Of a stretch of 64,000 nt of DNA, positions 18,341 to 58,436 are shown one piece after another. Numbering within the stretch: the stretch's first letter is position 1; every line of letters begins with the position of its first letter. A program made the translations under genes and the position numbers. The stretch lies in the sequence record NC_028829.1; one strand, written 5' to 3'. Below the pieces are notes generated by a model, which was not told the origin of the DNA, searched no databases, and saw only the letters and a program-made list of their open reading frames with translations.

Positions 18341-19873
18341 CTATGCGGCAAGATCTACTTTCTTGACTGCGTATTTGAACTCTTCTTGGTTGTAAAGCTC
18401 AATACGTTGCATACCATGCTTCATAGTATAATTTACGTGAGTGTACGGCTTCTTAGCGTTCTTACGTTTCGGCTTGATTGCCAAGTTGTCGATAATGTCA
18501 AACAGCTTCGCCGTAACTTTCGAACCGTGTTTACGTAGAATACGACCAATCGACTGCAAGTTGATGATCTTACTCTTCGTTGGGTGTGCGAAAATTACAT
18601 TGTGTAGTTTCTTGATACTGATACCAGTCGAGAATACACCGTATGATGCGACAATGATCGCCCCATCAATATCTTCTGCAATCTTCTTCACATGCGTACG
18701 GTCGTCTGTTTTAGTCTCACCAGATACGTAGAACACTTTCTCTGGGTCATATACGCTCTTCAACGCTTCGTAAAGCAATTTACCGTGTTTGATGTTCTTG
18801 AATAGCAATAACGTATTTTCGCCTTTCTTCGCGCTTAAATGATGCGCAAGCTTAATCAAGTAACGATTTCGCTGCTTGTTCTCAAGAATGAATTTCATTT
18901 CTTCTTGATATGAACTACCTTTCATTTCGTCACGTAACGGCTGTGGGTATTCAAGCATCAAGCAATTGATCTTCAGATCTGTTACTTGCCCTTCTTCCAT
19001 TAGCTGTGCAGTTGAAACAGGTCGGAAAATATCACCGAATGAACCAACGTACTGTAGAATATTCGCTTTACCGTCTCGAAGTGAGCCAGTAAGACCGATT
19101 TTGTATTCACAGTTTGTCATTTTCTTGATTATACCGTCTAATGACTTACCTGTTGCCAAGTGACACTCATCGACTAAAAGCATACCGAATTGGTCAAACC
19201 ATTCTTTCGGTTGTTTTACAGCAGATTGCCATGTAGATACAACGATTCGGCAGTCACCGATTGCGTCTCGATCAACCCCACCACGAATCTGATAAATGTC
19301 GTTGTGTTCGAATAAACGATAATCTAAGAAGTCATCGCGCATTTGCTGGACAAGTGCAGTTGTAGGTACAATCACTAATACTTTCTGAAGTTCGTGCTCT
19401 TCTTGTGCTAAGAACCATTTAGTAATCAGCGACTGAATTAATGATTTACCCGCAGATGTTGGTAGATTCAATAGACTGTGTTGGTTGTTAATTCCGTGAA
19501 ACACAGAGTCCATCTGATACCAATACGGTGAAATCTTATTCGACCCTGAGTAGATGTCAATAGACTCAACCCATGCTTCGAAATCTTCACGAGAAATTTT
19601 CTCAATCGGATCTAGCATTGGATCGGTTTCAATCGTATACATCATATTTGATGCAAACGCTTTAGCTTGTCCGACTAGACCGTATGGTAATAGACCTTGA
19701 TACGTCATTAGTCGAATTTTGCCATCCCAAATGCCCATTTTAAATTTCGGGTTAAATTTGTACCCATCTGTTAGAAATGAGAAATAGTCAATCATTTCGT
19801 GAGTGATGCTTGGCTCGGCTACGACTCTCGCATAACTCTCATCGTGGTACTCAATTTTAATGTCACATGTCAT
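18341..19873 (-). CDS. uvsW: UvsW SF2 helicase (start MTCDIK; single ORF including the C-terminal helicase domain)
   Basis: PTSAGKS, VDECH, GLTGS, VASYGVFSTGISI, QSIGRILR. Confidence 0.96.
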   Translation of the reverse strand: MTCDIKIEYHDESYARVVAEPSITHEMIDYFSFLTDGYKFNPKFKMGIWDGKIRLMTYQGLLPYGLVGQAKAFASNMMYTIETDPMLDPIEKISREDFEAWVESIDIYSGSNKISPYWYQMDSVFHGINNQHSLLNLPTSAGKSLIQSLITKWFLAQEEHELQKVLVIVPTTALVQQMRDDFLDYRLFEHNDIYQIRGGVDRDAIGDCRIVVSTWQSAVKQPKEWFDQFGMLLVDECHLATGKSLDGIIKKMTNCEYKIGLTGSLRDGKANILQYVGSFGDIFRPVSTAQLMEEGQVTDLKINCLMLEYPQPLRDEMKGSSYQEEMKFILENKQRNRYLIKLAHHLSAKKGENTLLLFKNIKHGKLLYEALKSVYDPEKVFYVSGETKTDDRTHVKKIAEDIDGAIIVASYGVFSTGISIKKLHNVIFAHPTKSKIINLQSIGRILRKHGSKVTAKLFDIIDNLAIKPKRKNAKKPYTHVNYTMKHGMQRIELYNQEEFKYAVKKVDLAA

Positions 19874-19898
19874 GATTTTTCTCTCTATGCGAGTTTTG

Positions 19899-19924
19899 TC
19901 TAAATATGTATAACTGTATTTATA
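19899..19924. promoter_or_regulatory. Back-to-back late promoters: TCTAAATA (+, 19899-19906) and TATAAATA (-, 19917-19924)
   Basis: Read in the uvsW / accessory intergenic region. Confidence 0.7.
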
Positions 19925-19937
19925 GAGGTCTAAATTC

Positions 19938-20147
19938 ATGACAAGAGACGAAATGTTTTACAAGATGAAAGATGGTTGCTTTAAGTTTGAGCATAAAGGC
20001 AAGAAATATCACGCGACTTTATGCAAGCATTATCTACCACATCTTGATTGCAATCGAGAAGAACAACGTAAAAATGAAAACGGTGCAGATAATGAACTTA
20101 CATTTTTCGATTTAAATCGAAATGTGTGGGTAACAATTGAATGCTAA
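19938..20147 (+). CDS. Small hypothetical protein, possibly SH3/WYL_2-like
   Basis: C-terminal FFDLNRNVW resembles the FDLEK..W motif of WYL_2-type phage proteins. Confidence 0.55.
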   Translation: MTRDEMFYKMKDGCFKFEHKGKKYHATLCKHYLPHLDCNREEQRKNENGADNELTFFDLNRNVWVTIEC

Positions 20148-20156
20148 GGTAAAACT

Positions 20157-20669
20157 ATGATTAAAGAATATCTAAAGAAACAAACCAAGCGCGTAGTTGC
20201 AGAATTTGCAAAAGAGTACTACGACATCGAACTTGATAAATCGCTGACTAAAAGCAAGATGATCGACGAGTTATTCACACACGAGCTACGCGAGGTTAAA
20301 GAACTACCACTAGAATGCTCTGTAATCGAGTCTGAGACGCGCTGTGAATCAGTCGATGAATCGGACGCGATTGTAGTCAAAGAGCTTTCAGACGACGTTA
20401 AGAAAGAATTAGAAGGTGTTTCTGCTAATGCCCCTTTAGGTGATGAAAACGTAACATTAGTAATCAAGGACGAATTCAAGCCTAAATGGATGCCTACTTA
20501 TCGCCGTGGGGATGAGCTATATCAGCCAGTTGCGCATGATGTGATTCATGATTGGAATATAGGTCGACGCGACTCTCACGAATTGAAGACGATTGAATAT
20601 TGGGTTAAGCGAAATGGTCATCTTTTAGTTCACGACCGTCTTTCGAACAGCTTCATTTATCTGAGGTAA
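20157..20669 (+). CDS. inh: Inh (prohead protease inhibitor)-like protein, paralogue 1
   Basis: EFAKEYY.IELD N-terminal motif; C-terminus IEYWVKRNGHLLVHDRLSNSF; divergent from uvsW as in T4. Confidence 0.7.
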   Translation: MIKEYLKKQTKRVVAEFAKEYYDIELDKSLTKSKMIDELFTHELREVKELPLECSVIESETRCESVDESDAIVVKELSDDVKKELEGVSANAPLGDENVTLVIKDEFKPKWMPTYRRGDELYQPVAHDVIHDWNIGRRDSHELKTIEYWVKRNGHLLVHDRLSNSFIYLR

Positions 20670-20672
20670 TTT

Positions 20673-21161
20673 ATGTTACGATTTAATGAATATGAAAACA
20701 CGCTTTACGGTATCGAACTGAGTTTATCACTTGAAGAGGGGTGGGGTAATCATAACCTAGCCAAACTAATCCCTGAGCCGAAAATCGATGAGTTACTAGA
20801 AACGAAACCGAAGCACCCGTGGAAGATTGCTGCGAATGCTGCTCAATACCAGAACTTGCTCTTCAATATTGATTCAAGTCGAATCGTATTCAAGAACACT
20901 GTATATCAAGTTGCGTATCTAGGTAACTTATACCCGCCAGAAGAAGTCGGTAAACCTGAAGGTGGGTATAAGTTCGCAGTTAAAAAGTCGATTTATCACT
21001 CACACCCTAGTAGTGAATTTTATTCAGGGAAAAACCCAAAAGACCCTAAGTTAAATGATACTATTTCATTGGTCTGGTGGTTTCAGAGAGGTACAATCGT
21101 ATTCGACTTATGGAAGCATAGCGAATATGATGAAAAACTTGAGAGATGGCGAAGAAAGTAG
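20673..21161 (+). CDS. Hypothetical protein, candidate internal head protein
   Basis: 162 aa; starts MLRFNEY...LEE|G; co-transcribed with inh. Confidence 0.7.
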   Translation: MLRFNEYENTLYGIELSLSLEEGWGNHNLAKLIPEPKIDELLETKPKHPWKIAANAAQYQNLLFNIDSSRIVFKNTVYQVAYLGNLYPPEEVGKPEGGYKFAVKKSIYHSHPSSEFYSGKNPKDPKLNDTISLVWWFQRGTIVFDLWKHSEYDEKLERWRRK

Positions 21162-21190
21162 TTGACAACTCAAATGTTTTTGCTTATTAT
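21162..21190 (+). promoter_or_regulatory. Early promoter TTGACA-N17-TATTAT
   Basis: Near-consensus sigma70 promoter. Confidence 0.85.
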
Positions 21191-21227
21191 AGTCATCGTT
21201 AACACAACATAACTAAGAGAGCAGAAT

Positions 21228-21494
21228 ATGAACAAACTCGAAACAGCTTTTGCTGAACATAACGCTGTACAAGTTCCTGTTGAAAAACCTAGAGAGTTTT
21301 ATACACCGTGTGGCGTTAAATTCACAACTGAACCGATGTTTAATACTGCAACTGGTAAATATGACAGTATTTTATATTCATTTGATACTGGTGAAAAAAT
21401 AATTGTTGACGATGAACTTGACAGCTTTCATGAAGCATATCAAGAATTCACTGCCAAGACATTCATGGCTATTCAAGAGCCAATCGTAATTTAA
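21228..21494 (+). CDS. Hypothetical early protein (88 aa)
   Basis: ORF with AAGAGAG RBS after the early promoter. Confidence 0.75.
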   Translation: MNKLETAFAEHNAVQVPVEKPREFYTPCGVKFTTEPMFNTATGKYDSILYSFDTGEKIIVDDELDSFHEAYQEFTAKTFMAIQEPIVI

Positions 21495-21509
21495 TGAGAG
21501 AAATATATT

Positions 21510-22136
21510 ATGAAAGATTTAGACATCGTACGTAAAGCACTTGCAACTAACGAGTCACCTAAGCGTCGTAACTTCCGCAAAGCAGTAATTCAATTGCTTG
21601 AAAAGCGTGACTTGACAGTTGCAGAGATTGTATATTCACTTAATGGGGGTGAATATGATGAGCGTCTTCGTCGTCGTGTTCAAGCTAACGTTCAGAATGC
21701 ACCTGAAATCATGGTCACTCGATTCGAAACGTTCGGTCACACCGAGATTCCTGTATACACGTTGAAAGGTGACGGTAAATTAGAAGTACTCATGCCAAAA
21801 CGCGAGTCGCCACGTAAGCCTGTATTAGGGATGGAATCTCTATTGACACGTGTTCTCAATCTTGGTCTGGGGCGTGCAGTAGCTGTTGCGGGTCCACAAG
21901 CGGTTGATGCATTTAAAAAGCTTGAACCGAAACAGCAAGCTCGTTATATTTCAACGCTTGCATTGTCAGATCACGCACGTTCTATTCTTACGCTTGTACA
22001 TAGCGCGAACTTGTCAAAAGAGCAGTTGAAAGAACTGAACGTTAAACAACTTGTTCGTCAGAATGCATCGTATGTTGTAGCGAAACTACACGGTTCAACT
22101 GCGTTTTTCGACAATATCAAATCAGTATACGGTTAA
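21510..22136 (+). CDS. Early protein with a probable N-terminal winged-helix domain (208 aa)
   Basis: AVIQLLEKRDLTVAEIVYSL...PVYTL pattern. Confidence 0.65.
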   Translation: MKDLDIVRKALATNESPKRRNFRKAVIQLLEKRDLTVAEIVYSLNGGEYDERLRRRVQANVQNAPEIMVTRFETFGHTEIPVYTLKGDGKLEVLMPKRESPRKPVLGMESLLTRVLNLGLGRAVAVAGPQAVDAFKKLEPKQQARYISTLALSDHARSILTLVHSANLSKEQLKELNVKQLVRQNASYVVAKLHGSTAFFDNIKSVYG

Positions 22137-22152
22137 ATTAACCAATTTAAAA

Positions 22153-22176
22153 GGGTGACTTCGGTCGCCCTTTTTT
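22153..22176 (+). terminator. Terminator of the early two-gene cassette
   Basis: GGGTGAC-TTCG-GTCGCCC-T6. Confidence 0.92.
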
Positions 22177-22184
22177 CGTTTGCG

Positions 22185-22192
22185 TCTAAATA
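22185..22192 (+). promoter_or_regulatory. Late promoter variant TCTAAATA
   Basis: Directly after a terminator, 22 nt before an ATG. Confidence 0.65.
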
Positions 22193-22214
22193 ATAGTAAA
22201 CAAAGGGGTTAACA

Positions 22215-22808
22215 ATGATAGAATTTTTAACAGAAATGGACAAAGCTAAACAAACCGGTAGATGGGCTCAATTTAAAGCAGCAACATCGGGTTCGAAAGG
22301 TGAAGTTAAAAAGCGTATGCAGCGCAAAGGTGGCTTCTGGGGTGTGTTTGCAGGTTTGATCGCGAGTGCGACAGCATCGGGTGAACTTAGAAAGCACAAT
22401 AAGTCACTAGAAGACCATAAGCTAAGAATGGAGCGTGCAGCAGTGAACACAATTCACAGTCTGAATGTTCTTAAAGACGTAATCGAGCTTGAACGTCCTC
22501 GTGACGAAGTAATGAAAGCTGCAAAGCGTTTAAAGCTTGATAACATGGAAATGAAGAAATACGCAACCGAAATGATTCGTGTCGTAGATGAATACAAGCG
22601 TGTTCATGACGAAGATAAGCAGGCAGGTGCGTTTCGTTTTAATGTGAAAGAATACGACCGTCATGATTTTCGTGAGATTTACCATCACTTGAACATGATT
22701 GAAGATAGCACATTTTACGTCGATAAAGCAGCGTCATCGGCTATGACTGGCGATACTGAATACGCAATTCGTATGATTCGCAATATTACAAACGCAGCAA
22801 CGAGGTAA
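22215..22808 (+). CDS. Helical hypothetical late protein, candidate internal head protein
   Basis: MIEFLTE|M start; Gly-rich hydrophobic segment GGFWGVFAGLIASATASG. Confidence 0.7.
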   Translation: MIEFLTEMDKAKQTGRWAQFKAATSGSKGEVKKRMQRKGGFWGVFAGLIASATASGELRKHNKSLEDHKLRMERAAVNTIHSLNVLKDVIELERPRDEVMKAAKRLKLDNMEMKKYATEMIRVVDEYKRVHDEDKQAGAFRFNVKEYDRHDFREIYHHLNMIEDSTFYVDKAASSAMTGDTEYAIRMIRNITNAATR

Positions 22809-22810
22809 TA

Positions 22811-23731
22811 ATGAGCATAATTTTTGAACGCGCTACATTGAAAACTCGAAAAGGTAGTGCAGTAAAACGCAGCAAGTGGGGCGTGGGTAAAGACATTGGC
22901 GGTTCATTATATGTTCACATTGACTATATCCCAGATGAGTTCAAGCAAATGGTTGCTGATGCTCGTACTCAAGTATCAATTGCAAACTCACAATTTACTC
23001 CGAATGTAGTACGAATTGACTACAAGAAAGGTGGAGTTGCTTTCTACGATTCAGTTGAATTTGATACTGTACAAGAACCAGCCGCGGGTATGATGATTAC
23101 TTATAGAGACGGTGTTGTTTCCAAACCACGTCAAGTAAACCAAATATGGCATCACAAATGGTTGTGGGTTGGTGATGATTATAGAGGGTTTGATACTTCT
23201 CAGTCATATGACCGCTCGGCTCAGTGGCTAGATCATGACGATATCCCATTTGCCAAGATCGGTAATAAGAAGACATGGCGTGAATGGTTATCTTCAGTTA
23301 ACTTGACTGAGGCATTTGACCGACCATCTAAAATACACTGGGTTGAGAAGAGAATTCACAGTTGGGGTGGTACGTTCACGGTAAACGGGGACGAATACGC
23401 GATTGCAATACAGTATCAAGAACAAAACGATGCATGGGAACTTGTGTTCTTAGGTATGAACAGTTCGGGTGATTATACTTACAGCGCAACAGGTCGAGGC
23501 AATATGTATGGTGTGTTTGCGACAGTAATGAGCGGTATGCGTGAATTTATAGACGAGCGAGAGCCAGAAACAATTTATTTCAGTGCAGAGCGAGATATAA
23601 AAAACGACAGTGATTCGAGAATAAAACTATACAATCGTTTAGTAAAACGATATGCTGATACATTACCGAATTACACATATAAAACGGTCGAAGGGAAAGT
23701 CTCGACTAAAACATATTTCATTAGAAAATAA
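22811..23731 (+). CDS. Two-domain hypothetical late protein (306 aa) with internal NLTE|A
   Basis: ORF with GAGG RBS; N-terminal domain GVGKDIGGSLYVH...IWHHKW; C-terminal domain VFATV...FI...PETIYFSA...SRIKLYNRLV. Confidence 0.8.
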   Translation: MSIIFERATLKTRKGSAVKRSKWGVGKDIGGSLYVHIDYIPDEFKQMVADARTQVSIANSQFTPNVVRIDYKKGGVAFYDSVEFDTVQEPAAGMMITYRDGVVSKPRQVNQIWHHKWLWVGDDYRGFDTSQSYDRSAQWLDHDDIPFAKIGNKKTWREWLSSVNLTEAFDRPSKIHWVEKRIHSWGGTFTVNGDEYAIAIQYQEQNDAWELVFLGMNSSGDYTYSATGRGNMYGVFATVMSGMREFIDEREPETIYFSAERDIKNDSDSRIKLYNRLVKRYADTLPNYTYKTVEGKVSTKTYFIRK

Positions 23732-23738
23732 GAGAGCA

Positions 23739-23858
23739 ATGAAAACATTTCAAGATTTTCATGAATTCAGCAGATTTCGTCCCTGCTTGATAATTAAAAA
23801 GCGCATTTTTGCGCTTTTTTTGTATCTATTGGTTGACGACAACACCAAAAAGCCGTAA
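23739..23858 (+). pseudogene. Probable remnant of an internal-protein gene (MKTFQDFHEF...) whose frame runs through the terminator and the next promoter
   Basis: AAGAGAG RBS plus a T4 capsid-targeting-like N-terminus; codons 20-39 overlap the terminator and promoter. Confidence 0.45.
23796..23821 (+). terminator. Terminator of the late cassette
   Basis: AAAAAGCGCA-TTTT-TGCGCTTTTTT. Confidence 0.85.
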
Positions 23859-23861
23859 TAT
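23833..23861 (+). promoter_or_regulatory. Early promoter TTGACG-N17-TAATAT
   Basis: Read from sequence. Confidence 0.8.
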
Positions 23862-23903
23862 CTCTATCAACGAAACGAATCGTCCATTACAAGAGAGAAC
23901 ATT

Positions 23904-25088
23904 ATGACTTCACTAAACAAATTCGAAAACACTTACACAATCAAATCAATCTACATGAGCGAGTTTGAAGCGCGTATTGCATCTACTAACAAGATTGCAA
24001 AACGTCTCGGTGTTGCTGAAATTACATTTGAGTTCGGTGAAGTGTACTCAAAAGTCATTATTATCAATCACCAAAAGCATCGTGAATACTACGTTGATGT
24101 TACTATTCGCGGTGAATACCCGTCAACTAAAGGTTGGTCTTTCTTGACTCAACTTGACCACGCGACAAATCTTATTCGTTCAAACAACGAAACAAATCAC
24201 CGTCATCTTCTAGGCGACACAACATGCGATCACTGTAACTCTAATCGTCAACGCAATGTAACTTACGTCATTCAGAATGAAGAGACTAAAGAAGAAATGC
24301 GCGTCGGTGGTTCATGCTTGAAATACTACTTGCCGACTAAATCTATCGACTCACTAGCGACGTTCTACACTGCAATCGCTGATTTCGGTGATGAAGAGTC
24401 TTGGGGTGGTGGTTCTCGTAAAATTTCATATAACGCGCTTCAGATTCTTGCTTGGGCTGCTATGTATGTTGAACACAAAGGTTGTTATCACGGTGGCGGT
24501 GTGACTCGTCAATGGGTTCTTGACATGATTAATGCAGGTACACCTGCACTTCGTACCGAACGCGATGCAATGTTAGATGAATATGATTACGACAATTGTG
24601 AAGAGCAAGCAAAAGAGATTTTAGAATGGGTTGCAACTCAAGAAGCGACTAACGATTTCATGCATAACGTCATCGCGTCTTGTTCTGCACCATTCATCGA
24701 GTACAAACAAACTGGTTACATTGCAGCGGCTATCTTAGCTTTCAACAAAGCAAAAGAGCGCGAGATTCTAGCTAAACGCGAAGCTGAACGTAAAGCAGAT
24801 TTGCCAGAATCTGAGTACGTCGGTACTATCAAAAAACGCGAGAACTTTAATGTCACTCTTGAAGCGGTTATCGTTTCTGAAGGCTACTACGGTGACACGT
24901 TCATTCACAAGTTTCGCGATGAACAAAACAATCTAATCGTGTGGTTTGGTTCAAAGCGTCTACGTGATAACGACGGCGAAGCGATTGAGAAAGGCGTTTC
25001 AGTAACTGTAAAAGCGACTGTAAAAGCGCACGAAGAGTTTCGCGACGAAAAACAGACAATCGTACAGCGTGTAGCGTTCGTCGCTTAG
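23904..25088 (+). CDS. Conserved-looking phage protein (394 aa) with a CxxC...C motif and a C-terminal OB-fold-like domain
   Basis: CDHC...VGGSCL; C-terminal YVG...V.VKATVKAH...KQT...RV. Confidence 0.75.
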   Translation: MTSLNKFENTYTIKSIYMSEFEARIASTNKIAKRLGVAEITFEFGEVYSKVIIINHQKHREYYVDVTIRGEYPSTKGWSFLTQLDHATNLIRSNNETNHRHLLGDTTCDHCNSNRQRNVTYVIQNEETKEEMRVGGSCLKYYLPTKSIDSLATFYTAIADFGDEESWGGGSRKISYNALQILAWAAMYVEHKGCYHGGGVTRQWVLDMINAGTPALRTERDAMLDEYDYDNCEEQAKEILEWVATQEATNDFMHNVIASCSAPFIEYKQTGYIAAAILAFNKAKEREILAKREAERKADLPESEYVGTIKKRENFNVTLEAVIVSEGYYGDTFIHKFRDEQNNLIVWFGSKRLRDNDGEAIEKGVSVTVKATVKAHEEFRDEKQTIVQRVAFVA

Positions 25089-25116
25089 AAACGCATACAG
25101 CTCGATTTAGAGACAC

Positions 25117-25144
25117 AAAAAAGCCCGCACTGAGCGGGCTTTTT
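25117..25144. terminator. Bidirectional terminator
   Basis: A6-GCCCGC-ACTGA-GCGGGC-T5 between convergent genes. Confidence 0.9.
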
Positions 25145-25145
25145 A

Positions 25146-25481
25146 TTATTCAGCAGGTGTAGTAACAGTCCAAGCGATTCGGAAGAATCGGCTATTGGTA
25201 TGTTCTCTGCAAAGTGTAGTTGTTGAATCAACCGCGCCTGCAATAATGTCAACGCATTCTTGAGAAAGACCAGTAATTGAACTCAACGGACTAGCAGTTT
25301 CAATCGCAGCTTTAAGCTCTTCATAAGTTTGCTTGTCTACGATAATGTAAGATTCGCCTGAGTGATTAAGCACAGACGTTGTTACATCATCATACCCACT
25401 TTTCGCAGCGTCTGCCGCTGCTACAGTCGCATCATCAAGTTCGACTGCAAGGTTCATATCAGTATAGATTGGTGTTGTCAT
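25146..25481 (-). CDS. Hypothetical late protein (111 aa)
   Basis: ORF downstream of inh paralogue 2, AGGA RBS. Confidence 0.7.
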   Translation of the reverse strand: MTTPIYTDMNLAVELDDATVAAADAAKSGYDDVTTSVLNHSGESYIIVDKQTYEELKAAIETASPLSSITGLSQECVDIIAGAVDSTTTLCREHTNSRFFRIAWTVTTPAE

Positions 25482-25489
25482 TTCAGTTC

Positions 25490-25987
25490 CTATTTAATTG
25501 TGATGAATTGACTATTGCGAGTTTCACGCACTAGCACCTTGCCGTCTTTCTCGACATAATGCAAGATTGATTTAACTACGCGAAGATCTGATGCGAGTAC
25601 ATCATCAAGCGAACCATCCCCTGCGATAATAGCTTTCGCAGATGTAACCGCGCTATCAGAAGCAGTCATGAAAAATTCACGACCACGACGGAATGGCAAT
25701 GGCATTGGTTCAAATGATTCATCGATTGGTAGTTCTACTTTATCAACGACTTCAGTTTTCACTTCGGAAATTTCTTTAATTTCTTTGGTTTCATCTTTCG
25801 TCTCTACAAGAAGTTCTTCCCATGGTAGTTGTTTCAATGGCGTTTTACCTTCAGCTTCTTCTACAAGCTTCTTAGCCATTGCGCCTTTTGATTTACGACG
25901 GTCAAGTTCGATGCCGTAATATTCTTTTGCAAACTCGTCTAGTTTTTCTTTAGTTAACGACTCTGCGTGTTTTTTCAATTGACTCAT
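25490..25987 (-). CDS. inh: Inh-like protein, paralogue 2
   Basis: C-terminus SILHYVEKDGKVLVRETRNSQFITIK closely matches T4 Inh as I recall it. Confidence 0.82.
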   Translation of the reverse strand: MSQLKKHAESLTKEKLDEFAKEYYGIELDRRKSKGAMAKKLVEEAEGKTPLKQLPWEELLVETKDETKEIKEISEVKTEVVDKVELPIDESFEPMPLPFRRGREFFMTASDSAVTSAKAIIAGDGSLDDVLASDLRVVKSILHYVEKDGKVLVRETRNSQFITIK

Positions 25988-26017
25988 TGTGAATCTCCAA
26001 ATTTAATCATTCGTTTA

Positions 26018-26058
26018 TATTTAGACAGGTTGACTTATATTATTTAGTCTTGTACAGT
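26018..26058. promoter_or_regulatory. Divergent promoters: late TCTAAATA (-, 26018-26025) and sigma70-like TTGACT-N17-TACAGT (+, 26030-26058)
   Basis: Read from the intergenic sequence. Confidence 0.6.
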
Positions 26059-27236: not shown

Positions 27237-28781
27237 TTATAGACCCTTAACGAATACACGACGGAAGTAAGCGTTTTTACCCATTGAAGCTGCAACAGGC
27301 GCGCCGTTACCAACTTTTTCAGCAGACTTAGTAGGATCTGCGAATGGGTTAACTTGAATACCGTAACGAGTTTTGAAACCAATTACAGGTTGGAAGTTCT
27401 TGCTGTCTGAACCACGTAGTGGAGTCAGCGGTACGTAAGGTGAGTAGAACACACCAGCGTCCATTTCAGTAGAACCTTTGAAACCAACTGTGAAGTAATC
27501 GTTCACTGCGTATTGGTCGATGAACACTTTGAAGCGACCACCTAGAACACCCGCGAACACAGTTTGGTTTGTGTCAGTGTTCATTGAACCGTCTTGCATA
27601 CCTTGTGCAGCAGGGCCAACAAGAGTATCAGTCATTGATAGTGCAGAAACTACGTTGCGTGATGCAATGATGAAGTTACCGTTACCACGACCAGTTTGAC
27701 GACCGATTTCGTTCGCTTCTTTCTCAATTTGAATTAGTAGAGCTTTGTAAGCTTCACCAGCCCAACGAGCACCTTTAACGTCTACAGCGTCTGCGAAGTC
27801 GAATACACCCGCTGCGCCTTGACCTTGAGTCCAACCAGACTTACCGATTTGCGCTTGAGAGTTAACTAGGTTAACGATTTCGCGGTTAAGCTCAACCATA
27901 ACTTCGTTAGCAAGAATACCGCTAAGTTCAGCGTCAGCGTCTAGACCGTGTACAGCACGTAGATCTTGTGCAAGCTCGATTGAGTATTGAGCTTTCAATT
28001 GACGTGATTTCGCTTCAACAACTTGTTTGTCGATGCGGAATGACATCTCGTTCCACTCGTTGTTGCTTGAACCGTTGAAGTTCTCTTGTAGTTCAGCCTG
28101 AGATGTTGCCATACCAGCGTCGATCTCAACTAGAAGACCACCTGCAACTGCGTCAGTGTATTCTGTAGCAGTCATTTCACCTGCAACTGCTAGAGTAACA
28201 GCGCCAAGTGCTAGGAAGTAACGAGTGTCAACGTCGCCACCAGAAGTAGTTACTTCAGCTTTGTACGGAGTACCGTCAGTTGCAGCACCAGTAGTTGGGA
28301 AATCTGCAATTGTTGATGCAGCAGCTTGACCAGAGAACGAAGCGTCAGCTTGACGAGTCGGGTGGAAAGCTTCTTTACCAGTTAGCGGGTCTTTACCGTA
28401 TACTGAGCGAAGTGTGAATACTTGGCTAGTTGGGCCAGTCATTGGCTGAACACCAGCGATATCGAATGCGATAAGCTGAGGAATAGCACGACGAACCATA
28501 CCCATTACAGTTGGACCGATGTTTGTTACTGCACCAGTAGTAACACCTTGAGCGATGTTAGACGGATCGTAACCATGGTCACCGTTAACTACAGCTTCGT
28601 TTAGACCAGCATTGAATGCTTCGATTAGCTGTGGGTCACGGTACATTGGATCGTTGTTGATGTCGCGATCTTGGTTTTCAAAGATTTTCGACATGATTTT
28701 TTGCTTAGTTGCAGTCGCAATCTCTGGCATTTCCGCACCGTCTGCTTCAAGCAATTCTTTCCATTTTTCAGTTAGGTTCAT
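27237..28781 (-). CDS. 23: Major capsid protein gp23
   Basis: NE|AVVNGDHGYD, VRRAIPQLIAFDIAGVQPM, SRQLKAQYSIELAQDLRAVHG, GFKTRYG. Confidence 0.99.
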   Translation of the reverse strand: MNLTEKWKELLEADGAEMPEIATATKQKIMSKIFENQDRDINNDPMYRDPQLIEAFNAGLNEAVVNGDHGYDPSNIAQGVTTGAVTNIGPTVMGMVRRAIPQLIAFDIAGVQPMTGPTSQVFTLRSVYGKDPLTGKEAFHPTRQADASFSGQAAASTIADFPTTGAATDGTPYKAEVTTSGGDVDTRYFLALGAVTLAVAGEMTATEYTDAVAGGLLVEIDAGMATSQAELQENFNGSSNNEWNEMSFRIDKQVVEAKSRQLKAQYSIELAQDLRAVHGLDADAELSGILANEVMVELNREIVNLVNSQAQIGKSGWTQGQGAAGVFDFADAVDVKGARWAGEAYKALLIQIEKEANEIGRQTGRGNGNFIIASRNVVSALSMTDTLVGPAAQGMQDGSMNTDTNQTVFAGVLGGRFKVFIDQYAVNDYFTVGFKGSTEMDAGVFYSPYVPLTPLRGSDSKNFQPVIGFKTRYGIQVNPFADPTKSAEKVGNGAPVAASMGKNAYFRRVFVKGL

Positions 28782-29729: not shown

Positions 29730-29737
29730 TATTTATA
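29730..29737 (-). promoter_or_regulatory. Late promoter TATAAATA (gene 22), overlapping the gene 21 stop
   Basis: Exact consensus. Confidence 0.8.
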
Positions 29738-30374
29738 AGAGAGTTTTTAACGTTTCCGCTAGTTTCGCAAATTCAGCGTCATTACTTTCTGTAATTTCTT
29801 CTGTTTTTACTGACTTAGCAGCTTCATTTGACTCAGTTACTGGTTTAACGTAAGCAGCAGGTGCACTAGGACCCCACACTACATCAACGCCTACTGTAAG
29901 ACGGAAATCTTGCACTTCGTTGATGCCGTCAACTTGCTTAACTGAACCAAGACCTCTTGAACTCACGCCCGGTACCCAACCACCTTCGATTAGACCTCGA
30001 ACTATTTGTCCCTTCGGTGTATTTAGTACGATAGCTTTACCCATTACGTTATCGCCGTCCCACCACAACTCAGTAATTCGAATCGCAGCTTCAGCGGGGT
30101 CAACGTTTGAACGACTTGGGTGATTAAGCTCGCCCAACGCTTGATTCGTGTTGACTTGTTCTTTCATGTATTTAGATACAGCATTTTCCATGACTTTTTT
30201 CGGGTATCGACGACCATTACGGTTTACGACATTCGATTGCATGAAAATACCTTCGATGTACAAGTCACCGCCCTTTTCCGTGGGCATTTTCGCTTCAACA
30301 AGAGGCTTTTCACCGAAGCTATCAGCGCAACCGCTAGATAAACCCCAGTCTTCAATTAAGAGTTGTAATTCCAT
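29733..30374 (-). CDS. 21: Prohead protease gp21
   Basis: LYIEGIFMQ, NRNGRRYP, ALGELNHP, GVSSRGLG. Confidence 0.97.
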   Translation of the reverse strand: MELQLLIEDWGLSSGCADSFGEKPLVEAKMPTEKGGDLYIEGIFMQSNVVNRNGRRYPKKVMENAVSKYMKEQVNTNQALGELNHPSRSNVDPAEAAIRITELWWDGDNVMGKAIVLNTPKGQIVRGLIEGGWVPGVSSRGLGSVKQVDGINEVQDFRLTVGVDVVWGPSAPAAYVKPVTESNEAAKSVKTEEITESNDAEFAKLAETLKTLL

Positions 30375-58076: not shown

Positions 58077-58436
58077 ATGGAATTTCTTCTACCTGTTTTG
58101 CCAATTATTGGCATGTTTGTAATATTACTTCTAATTCTAGCAGTGTCTTTCTTCATGGCGAAGATTTTCAAGCTAGACATTAAACTACCTTACGGTAAAA
58201 TCATCACTGCTGCACTTCTACTCACAGTTGCTGCGAGTGGTTTTAAAATTGCAACGTCGCCAATTACTCGTCCTACCATGAACGAAGCAGTCAACGACAC
58301 AGCCAAGTACAAAGTAGACGAATTCACTGAGCTTGAAGCACCTGTACTAGAAGACAAGTCATTCAAAGCTGAAGATGTTGATGTTACTACGCTAGACAGC
58401 GAAGAGCGTATCAAAAATCACACTAAGAACTTGTAA
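58077..58436 (+). CDS. Small membrane protein (two predicted TM helices)
   Basis: Two hydrophobic N-terminal stretches and an acidic C-terminal tail. Confidence 0.75.
   Translation: MEFLLPVLPIIGMFVILLLILAVSFFMAKIFKLDIKLPYGKIITAALLLTVAASGFKIATSPITRPTMNEAVNDTAKYKVDEFTELEAPVLEDKSFKAEDVDVTTLDSEERIKNHTKNL

Follow-up and report, generated by a model that had tools for sequence, protein, structure and literature searches.

Virion proteins of phage T4 shed propeptides of 7–65 residues (PMC9026906), and mass spectrometry has shown that the propeptide of T4 Alt is cut at ITE-6, with a second site at LTE-619 (PMC5694885). Polyvalent proteins are multi-domain phage proteins that are encoded late and contain GNAT, Pol-beta nucleotidyltransferase and other domains, with capsid-delivered effectors as their theme (PMC5512222). 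Here, we describe a late transcription unit of Vibrio phage ValKK3, a KVP40-like, T4-related phage, and consider whether it belongs with these systems. The window analysed is a stretch of 64 000 nt from record NC_028829.1, in which position 20000 corresponds to position 144000 of the record; over the 6 kb compared, it was 100% identical to ValKK3. Our main interpretation, to which we assign a probability of about 0.5, is that the cassette is a conserved late head-cargo unit of KVP40-like vibriophage. The cassette contains two coupled genes, ORF275 and ORF276, both annotated as hypothetical, and is located between uvsW and gp23 with an inh paralogue on either side. The relevant features, in window coordinates, are as follows.

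22149..22174, + strand: intrinsic terminator at the left boundary of the cassette (11-bp stem with 5 GC pairs, then a T run)
22185..22192, + strand: T4-type late promoter variant TCTAAATA, 23 nt 5' of the ORF275 ATG
22215..22808, + strand: ORF275, 197 aa, basic, with the leader MIEFLTE
22811..23311, + strand: ORF276 N domain (aa 1–167), a conserved alpha/beta enzyme-like domain with the leader MSIIFE, ending at LTE-167
23312..23731, + strand: ORF276 C domain (aa 168–306), predicted GNAT-like fold, Pfam DUF6934
23739..23858, + strand: third ORF ('MKTFQDF'), remnant of an internal-protein (IP) gene, with a leader that fits M-K-T-[YFW]-x-[DE]-[FYW]
23796..23819, + strand: intrinsic terminator at the right boundary of the cassette, kept in KVP40, nt-1, QD01, D481 and 1.081.O
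20157..20669, + strand: first inh paralogue (prohead protease inhibitor; annotation, phrog_8608 E 8e-69), in a neighbouring late unit
25490..25987, − strand: second inh paralogue (annotation), with TCTAAATA at 26025

An earlier, sequence-only reading of this DNA had proposed a self-contained late unit, and its architecture was confirmed: a terminator, the TCTAAATA promoter, two coupled genes and a second terminator are all present. Both bounding terminators were graded strong. The left one closes the upstream ORF273–ORF274 unit, which is driven by a sigma-70-type promoter, and is kept in KVP40 and 1.081.O. Sigma-70-type promoters were located in the flanking units at 21162–21190 and at 23833–23861, the latter serving ORF277. 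The window, only ~5.5% of which is intergenic, contains 17 copies of the late motif T[AC]TAAATA; 12 of them, correctly oriented, lie 11–41 nt 5' of a start codon, and a 13th lies 44 nt 5' of the annotated uvsW start. Among the genes served by the motif are gp23, gp22, gp18, gp19 and inh, with TATAAATA upstream of gp23, gp22 and gp18, and the variant used by the cassette also upstream of inh2, gp19 and several baseplate genes. In 10 related phages a late promoter lies at −23 to −27 (in D479 as the variant CATAAATA), and the position of the promoter, the N-terminal leaders and the linker motif are conserved across these 10 phages. Late-only expression of the ORF275–ORF276 unit, predicted from the conserved late promoter in the 10 phages, is well supported. 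The ORF at 20673, which the sequence-only reading had listed along with the cassette genes, proved to sit in a separate late unit, in which TCTAAATA at 19899 is followed by ORF270, inh1 and ORF272.

The ORF275 product (22.8 kDa, pI 9.5) is small, basic and late, as is characteristic of IP-type proteins. Homologues were found in KVP40-like phages only; residues 1–7 are invariant, and the remaining segments are 78–86% conserved. The predicted layout consists of a low-confidence N-terminal region (residues 1–38), a weakly hydrophobic G/A/S-rich helix (residues ~39–56) and a four-helix bundle. The AF2 model (pLDDT 69) gave no fold matches, holin-like folds included. We considered whether ORF275 could be a holin of the T4 type or another membrane protein, and rejected this. 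The maximum 19-residue Kyte–Doolittle score is 1.09, which does not indicate a clear membrane helix, compared with 2.99 for a true membrane helix encoded elsewhere in the 64 000 nt; there is no match to a holin family, and the transmembrane helix that a holin would carry near residues 35–55 was not found.

ORF276 (22811–23731, + strand; 35 kDa, pI 8.4), likewise small, basic and late, combines a strongly conserved enzyme-like N domain with a swappable GNAT-like module, with an L-x-E motif at the junction. The AF2 model has a pLDDT of 87.8, with values of mostly 85–98 in the N domain and only 55 for residues 1–10; a sequence search of the PDB gave no matches. The N domain is 96.4% identical to that of KVP40 and has near-invariant residues K27, H36, D85, E89 and H114-H115-K116. 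No Pfam family matched it, and with 1,167 cluster representatives (E≤1e-3) it defines a large, so far unannotated family with an invariant H-H-K motif. The family is widespread beyond T4-like phages. Leader-bearing homologues were also found on a contig encoding a multisubunit RNA polymerase, and a leaderless homologue in a myovirus carrying UvsY/UvsW. Additionally, 35 phage proteins of 2,000–6,451 aa contain the N domain; these very large proteins have almost no recognizable domains besides DnaJ.

The other associations of the N domain raise the possibility, which we consider unlikely, that ORF276, with ORF275 as partner, is an unpackaged cytoplasmic late enzyme of RNA/tRNA or nucleotide metabolism, the N-terminal motifs being incidental or serving translation or folding. 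The domain is fused to Pol-beta nucleotidyltransferases, to the RNA-binding domain NFACT-R and, on a 368-kb T4-like contig, to a complete CCA-adding enzyme (PolyA_pol + HD) with an adjoining NUDIX gene. In D479, a solo N-domain gene adjoins a CCA-adding/tRNA nucleotidyltransferase gene, and in ValKK3 the distance to the tRNA nucleotidyltransferase gene is 2.3 kb. A catalytic role is suggested by the invariant H, K, D and E residues. However, a cytoplasmic enzyme would leave the late-only, insulated expression of the unit unexplained, together with three observations detailed below: the near-identical leader on two unrelated D479 proteins, the preference of the leader for N-terminal copies of the domain, and the IP-type gene that shares the transcription unit in D481.

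The C domain of ORF276 is the variable part of the protein, being only ~25% identical to its KVP40 counterpart and missing from 1.081.O and D479. In the predicted model it shows the strand–helix order of the GNAT fold, and the best 50 Foldseek matches in the PDB were all GNAT acetyltransferases (best E 2.4e-3, probability 0.75–1.0). The isolated domain scored 26.9 bits against DUF6934 (E 5.4e-6), 0.1 bit short of the gathering cut-off of 27, and a relative, P0025, scored 41 bits. A GxG-containing loop precedes the conserved helix in the ValKK3-type allele and in solo DUF6934 proteins, but not in the KVP40-type allele. The exact acetyl-CoA loop signature (Q/R-x-x-G-x-G/A, between strand 4 and helix 3) was not seen in the C domain of either allele. 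When the whole ORF276 model was compared with BFVD by Foldseek, several Alt-annotated phage proteins were recovered (E 4.5e-6 to 3e-3); the relatives included Alt-annotated ADP-ribosyltransferases and proteins with zeta-toxin, deaminase or ParB domains. The C domain may be the source of the matches to Alt-annotated proteins.

Downstream of ORF276, the 'MKTFQDF' ORF does begin with the leader noted in the sequence-only reading; it is not an intact gene, since its frame continues through the terminator at 23796–23819 and is not conserved in KVP40. We therefore do not regard the third ORF as a genuine gene of 39 aa and have reinterpreted it as a gene remnant. It matches the IP heptapeptide without a canonical [IL]xE, and its body has been lost, which we counted as one deletion. 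The third ORF is what is left of a classical T4-type IP gene, formerly part of the cassette. The IP leader pattern, taken from the T4 record KJ477685.1, matched only two of 8,170 ATG starts in the 214 kb of ValKK3, where 0.019 matches were expected. The second match, ORF327 (98 aa, pI 9.2), fits the full 10-residue IP layout, with LIE-10 and with CATAAATA ~30 nt upstream, and lies outside the ORF275–ORF276 cassette. ValKK3 has one intact IP-type gene, ORF327, away from the cassette. In D481, the same slot at the end of the cassette is occupied by an intact 84-aa gene (D481_0017, pI 8.8), an ORFan with an IP-type leader, FNE-9 and LNE-16; six other phages have no gene at this position.

The N-termini quoted in the sequence-only reading, the internal LTE-167|A of ORF276 and the GLNE|A site of gp23 at E62/A63 were all found in the sequence. 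An IP-type capsid-targeting leader had also been assigned to ORF275 and ORF276, and this assignment did not hold, as neither fits M-K-T-[YF]-x-[DE]-F with [IL]-x-E at residues 10–19. MIEFLTE and MSIIFE seem rather to resemble the T4 Alt propeptide: both end, as far as sequence can tell, in the manner of an Alt-type propeptide, with [IL]-x-E at residue ~6–9. The [LI]xE motifs of the cassette are LTE-7, the only one anywhere in ORF275, and IFE-6 and LTE-167 in ORF276. They mark the N-terminus and the domain junction, and in the KVP40-like set none is internal to ORF275 or to the ORF276 N domain, an absence that is only mildly improbable by chance (P = 0.12 and 0.17). As [LI]-x-E falls within the first 12 residues of 12/63 window genes (19%), the motif by itself is weak evidence.

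What carries weight is the conservation and portability of the leaders. The D479 homologues of ORF275 and ORF276 begin MIEFITE and MIEFIAE, respectively, and have unrelated mature parts. Among N-terminal copies of the N domain, 50 of 86 follow a hydrophobic-x-E leader, versus 11 of 65 internal copies (Fisher p = 3e-7, for sequences that are not independent). The leader behaves as an N-terminal add-on that is separate from the fold. It is conceivable, although we regard it as very improbable, that the leaders are a chance resemblance on late proteins of unrelated role, such as the timing of lysis or a membrane process. The frequency of the motif in the window, the weakly hydrophobic segment of ORF275 and the empty family annotation searches are consistent with this explanation, but ORF275 falls far below the hydropathy of a membrane helix and has no holin-like fold match, the leader shows conservation, portability and enrichment where the domain copy is N-terminal, and the IP-type slot also speaks against chance.

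Two head genes of the window bear on how such leaders might be processed.

29733..30374, − strand: gp21 prohead protease, homologue of KVP40 gene 21 and presumed trans-acting processing enzyme
27237..28781, − strand: gp23 major head protein, with a propeptide containing [LI]xE motifs as expected for gp21 sites

Residues 1–62 of gp23 contain five [LI]xE motifs, the last being LNE-62|A, and the N-terminus of gp21 bears LIE-8. More generally, [LI]xE ends at residues 4–8 in ValKK3 gp23, gp22, gp21, gp68 and Inh1. The similarity of the motif to those of gp68, gp22 and gp21, the position of the unit among head genes with inh paralogues on both sides, and the basic, helical and highly charged nature of ORF275, like that of gp68 (pI ~10), could mean that one or both products are prohead-core or assembly accessories (compare gp67, gp68 and Inh) that are processed by gp21, mostly cleared and not injected. 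We consider this quite unlikely. Core proteins are usually cleaved at many sites, in contrast to the single motif of ORF275; ORF276 is enzyme-like with a swappable effector-type domain, and its N-domain family is common outside T4-like phages and within very large multidomain phage proteins.

Packaging of ORF275 and ORF276, their cleavage, their injection and their action in the host are what we infer for the head-cargo unit. The two proteins would be produced alongside the head proteins, and their leaders, ending in I/L-x-E as in Alt, would draw them into the prohead scaffolding core. The gp21 prohead protease would then trim both leaders, possibly with an extra cut of ORF276 at the linker LTE-167 that would release the conserved enzyme-like N domain and the variable GNAT-like domain. 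The mature proteins would be retained in the head until they enter a new host along with the DNA. The chances that at least one of ORF275 and ORF276 is packaged are roughly even, and the two could plausibly be added to the T4 class of head cargo.

Capsid cargo was also the interpretation offered by the sequence-only reading. Late-only expression, the IP slot and Alt-like leaders speak for it, whereas the IP leader on ORF275 and ORF276 and the intact third ORF on which it had drawn were not found. Counting against the cargo interpretation, both proteins differ in leader type from ORF327, whose IP-type leader ValKK3 evidently uses. The leader-bearing homologues on the RNA polymerase contig, the leaderless homologue in the UvsY/UvsW myovirus, the N-domain links to CCA-adding enzyme and NFACT-R, and the negative comparisons with Alt also count against it. 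An anti-defence payload, which had been suggested as the function of the cargo, found no matching family in PADLOC, Pfam or PHROGs searches; the PADLOC search returned one stray weak match and no known anti-defence family. A literature search turned up no virion proteome for KVP40-like phages.

We also considered a broader possibility, which is tentative and somewhat unlikely: that ORF276 represents a new class of capsid-delivered enzyme. Such a protein would have an Alt-like mini-propeptide, a linker split by the prohead protease, and catalytic and exchangeable GNAT-like modules; ORF275 would be co-packaged, and the giant N-domain proteins would be injected effectors. The N module of such an enzyme might act on tRNA/RNA ends or on nucleotides.

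Should the head-cargo interpretation be correct, KVP40-like vibriophages, which are used in aquaculture phage work, would inject at least one enzyme-like protein at infection. In T4, proteins that arrive by this route shape the takeover of the host and the range of hosts. If the new enzyme class is real, the N-domain proteins of 2,000–6,451 aa would be widespread and unrecognized injected effectors. Regardless of the cargo interpretation, the T4 IP leader is conserved out to the KVP40 group (ORF327 and D481_0017), and the end of the cassette contains a variable IP slot. The ORF276 N-domain family merits a Pfam entry and a structure.

Compared with the T4 internal proteins, the locus shares the IP heptapeptide on the third ORF, the small basic D481 gene in the slot and the layout of ORF327. 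The gene content of the slot differs among close relatives, as it does at the T4 IP locus (PMC4122927, PMC9026906). However, ORF275 and ORF276 lack the IP leader, the ORF in the window is a remnant, and in their bodies the proteins bear no relation to T4 IPs. The C domain shares its fold order with GNAT/DUF6934 proteins, whereas no acetyl-CoA loop signature of the usual form can be made out and the loop differs between alleles.

The resemblance to T4 Alt lies in a late gene, an enzyme-like product and a very short leader (ITE-6 in Alt versus LTE-7 in ORF275 and IFE-6 in ORF276), together with a further [IL]TE site (LTE-619 in Alt versus LTE-167 in ORF276). Unlike Alt, ORF276 has no ADP-ribosyltransferase domain: the Pfam family ADPrib_exo_Tox matched neither ORF275 nor ORF276, and matched Alt of T4, IME08 and Aes012. 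No sequence or profile similarity was detected between ORF276 and Alt of T4, IME08, Aes012 or ValKK3 with HMMs and hhalign. ValKK3's own Alt-like protein, ORF202, is encoded elsewhere; it has LNE-9, and its gene has a late promoter. Next to gp48 of phiAS5 and phT4A there is no alt gene.

In comparison with the polyvalent proteins of Iyer et al. (2017), ORF276 has only two domains, and fusions to MuF or portal proteins were not observed. The giant N-domain proteins have almost no recognizable domains, so that for those proteins the polyvalent label is inferential. The likeness consists in the occurrence of the N domain inside proteins of this size, its nucleotidyltransferase fusions, the fold relatives with zeta-toxin, deaminase, ParB and ART domains, the GNAT-like module and the late unit in which ORF276 is encoded.

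The genes ORF275 and ORF276 of Vibrio phage ValKK3, together with the short third ORF that follows them, are best explained as a head-cargo cassette, and we estimate a probability of about 0.5 that one or both of the ORF275 and ORF276 proteins are packaged and trimmed. Window positions 20000-26000 were 100 % identical to ValKK3 over the stretch compared. Because window position 20000 matches record position 144000, the window represents record positions 124001-188000. ValKK3 is a KVP40-like phage of the T4-related Straboviridae, genus Schizotequatrovirus. In its annotation, the cassette falls between uvsW and gp23, with one paralogue of inh, the prohead-protease inhibitor gene, on either side. 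ORF275 and ORF276 are coupled, the ORF276 ATG being 2 nt past the ORF275 stop codon, and the homologues of these genes overlap in several relatives. The features, in window positions, are:

22149-22174, strong intrinsic terminator, left end of the cassette
22185-22192, late promoter of the cassette, TCTAAATA
22215-22808, ORF275, 197 aa, annotated as hypothetical, KVP40 counterpart KVP40.0372
22811-23731, ORF276, 306 aa, annotated as hypothetical, KVP40 counterpart KVP40.0371
23739-23858, third ORF, short 3' member of the cassette
23796-23819, strong intrinsic terminator, right end of the cassette
21162-21190, sigma-70-type promoter of a neighbouring unit, TTGACA-17-TATTAT
23833-23861, sigma-70-type promoter of a neighbouring unit, TTGACG-17-TAATAT
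within 19899-21161 and 25490-26032, inh1 and inh2, each preceded by TCTAAATA
29733-30374, gp21, prohead protease, the proposed trimming enzyme

ORF270 and ORF272, the latter the third candidate of the sequence-only reading, share a transcription unit with inh1; ORF272 homologues in the related phages KVP40 and 1.081.O retain the N-terminus and the L-[ED]-E motif at residue 22. The gp23 gene (27237-28781, minus strand) encodes five [LI]xE motifs in propeptide residues 1-62, a pattern that would fit T4-like multi-site propeptide trimming.

The proposal of a self-contained late unit was borne out by the promoter, the bracketing terminators and the retention of the promoter 23-27 nt 5' of the ORF275 ATG in ten phages, across which ORF275 identity falls to about 65 % (F86 being the most distant measured). 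T[AC]TAAATA occurs 17 times in the window, with 12 copies correctly oriented 11-41 nt 5' of a start codon, and the genes behind it include gp23, gp22, gp18, gp19, inh2 and baseplate genes. Given this placement and the scarcity of intergenic DNA (~5.5 % of the window), we consider that the C variant functions as a T4-type late promoter in ValKK3. A thirteenth copy, TATAAATA, is located at 19924 on the minus strand, 44 nt ahead of the annotated start of uvsW; the longest uvsW ORF (18341-19939, minus strand) begins 66 nt 5' of that start (19873), and the position of TATAAATA supports the annotated start and late uvsW transcription. The cassette is a late unit with early units on both sides. At 23796-23861 a terminator is followed immediately by a sigma-70-type promoter, and another such promoter is found at 21162-21190. 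These junctions look like modules known from nt-1 and KVP40 as promoter-stem-loops (PeSL; PMC4122927), and may mediate the gene swaps seen around the cassette.

The sequence-only reading had assigned T4-type cargo tags to ORF275 and ORF276. Both proteins lack a leader of the T4 internal-protein (IP) type, but their leaders do resemble the propeptide of Alt, the head-packaged ADP-ribosyltransferase of T4. The six-residue Alt leader ends in ITE and a second motif, LTE, stands at 619 in the T4 record; mass spectrometry detected gp21 cuts at both (PMC5694885), and the propeptides removed from T4 virion proteins are 7 to 65 residues long (PMC9026906). The ValKK3 motifs are LTE-7 in ORF275, and IFE-6 and LTE-167 in ORF276. 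Across the ten phages, the ORF275 leader reads MIEF[LI]TE, the ORF276 leader terminates in [IF]-x-E, and an L-x-E-[AS] motif occurs at residue 167-172 of the ORF276 homologues. ValKK3 also encodes an Alt-like protein with a motif at LNE-9 and a late promoter in front:

record 99853-101481 (comparison stretch L026, 25853-27481), outside the window, strand opposite to its neighbours, ORF202, 542 aa, Alt-like ADP-ribosyltransferase, CATAAATA upstream

A single gene separates ORF202 from the DNA ligase gene, 1 kb away, a position that recalls the T4 layout, in which alt is beside gene 30.

The bare motif is common, being present within the first 12 residues of 12/63 window genes (gp23, gp22, gp21, gp68 and Inh1 included), and three observations carry more weight. 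ORF275 residues 1-7 are invariant, against 78-86 % conservation of the remaining segments. In D479, two unrelated proteins, the ORF275 and ORF276 homologues, begin MIEFITE and MIEFIAE. Finally, a hydrophobic-x-E leader precedes 50/86 N-terminal copies of the ORF276 N domain vs 11/65 internal copies (Fisher p = 3e-7, for sequences that are not independent). This enrichment, and a pLDDT <50 for residues 1-5 of the ORF276 model, indicate that the leader is an N-terminal appendage outside the fold. In the KVP40-like set, no [LI]xE occurs inside the ORF276 N domain and ORF275 has a single, N-terminal one; this sparseness is suggestive, though by itself only mildly improbable.

ORF276 has two domains (AF2 model, pLDDT 87.8). 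The N domain (1-167) shares 96.4 % identity with KVP40, has near-invariant residues K27, H36, D85, E89 and H114-H115-K116, and matched no Pfam family. A profile search recovered 1,167 cluster representatives; the 183 scored copies comprise 63 solo proteins, 85 fusions of 211-1,999 aa and 35 copies in proteins of 2,000-6,451 aa. Solo proteins stop one to three residues past the L-x-E motif. One 3,363-aa carrier is encoded on a temperate siphovirus-like contig (L010, 6615-16706), and the large carriers checked (from P0052-P0183) match phrog_22978 and are nearly devoid of Pfam domains, one having DnaJ. Fusion partners include Pol-beta nucleotidyltransferases and NFACT-R. On a 368-kb T4-like contig (L011, 8001-10235) the domain is fused with a complete CCA-adding enzyme (PolyA_pol + HD), with a NUDIX gene adjacent, and in D479 (L020, 1598-3225) a solo N-domain gene abuts a tRNA nucleotidyltransferase gene. 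The fusions to CCA enzyme and nucleotidyltransferase suggest the main rival to head cargo, a late enzyme related to RNA or tRNA that acts in the cytoplasm.

The C domain (168-306) is GNAT-like by fold search, borders on the threshold of Pfam DUF6934 (26.9 against 27 bits), shares only about 25 % identity between ValKK3 and KVP40, and is missing from 1.081.O and D479. Viral-model fold relatives of ORF276 include Alt-annotated ADP-ribosyltransferases as well as zeta-toxin-, deaminase- and ParB-domain proteins. Since the N domain is confined, among isolated phages, to 51 KVP40-like Vibrio phages, these matches probably stem from the C domain. No kinship of ORF276 with four Alt proteins emerged from sequence and profile comparisons.

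ORF275 is basic and very charged, with homologues restricted to KVP40-like phages. Residues 1-38 were modelled with low confidence, and a weakly hydrophobic G/A/S-rich helix follows, whose hydropathy of 1.09 is too low for a clear membrane helix; the remainder is modelled as a four-helix bundle, for which a fold search gave no relatives. Elsewhere in the window, next to PAAR and gp5.1, the homologue of KVP40.0338 (58077-58436, plus strand, 119 aa) has a strongly hydrophobic stretch at its N-terminus (hydropathy 2.99). Across 214 kb of ValKK3, Rz-like spanins are annotated but a holin gene is not.

The third ORF, previously proposed as a "MKTFQDF ORF", is no intact gene, because its frame crosses the terminator and is not conserved in KVP40. 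Its first seven residues match the T4 IP leader (T4 record KJ477685.1), and the pattern M-K-T-[YFW]-x-[DE]-[FYW] matches 2 of 8,170 ATG starts across 214 kb of ValKK3, where 0.019 matches would be expected. In D481 the slot of the third ORF, after the ORF276 homologue and before the terminator, is occupied by an intact gene, and the second ValKK3 match is an intact late gene:

D481 OZ195932.1 (L019, 2583-2837), VPHD481_0017, 84 aa, basic (pI 8.8), IP leader followed by FNE-9 and LNE-16
record NC_028829.1 197547-197843 (L025, 9547-9843), outside the window, ORF327, 98 aa, pI 9.2, CATAAATA about 30 nt upstream

VPHD481_0017 is an ORFan in the protein collection searched. The slot is empty in six phages (nt-1, QD01, 6E35.1a, D527, F86 and 1.081.O) and holds no more than a remnant in ValKK3 and KVP40; the ValKK3 stump has lost its body, counted as one deletion, and the KVP40 stump has one further stop. 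The third ORF is very likely the remnant of an IP-type gene, and the cassette holds a variable slot for such genes. The ten-residue ORF327 leader has the same layout as those of T4 IPII and IPIII, its cleavage motif falling at residue 10, and ORF327, like T4 ipI, sits in the vicinity of 57B, gene 1 and gene 3. As a genuine internal protein in ValKK3, ORF327 is a strong candidate. Together, the D481 slot gene and ORF327 argue that a T4-type internal-protein system is present in the KVP40-like group.

A literature search found no virion proteome for KVP40-like phages, and we infer packaging, cleavage, injection and function of ORF275 and ORF276. A PADLOC search gave a single stray, weak match, which weighs neither in favour of an anti-defence function nor against one. 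As head cargo, the two proteins would be synthesised late, taken into the prohead core by their Alt-like leaders, trimmed by gp21, possibly with a further cut in the ORF276 linker, and delivered together with the DNA. The head-cargo reading follows the same logic as that of late-encoded phage effectors and polyvalent proteins (PMC5512222, PMC9503650).
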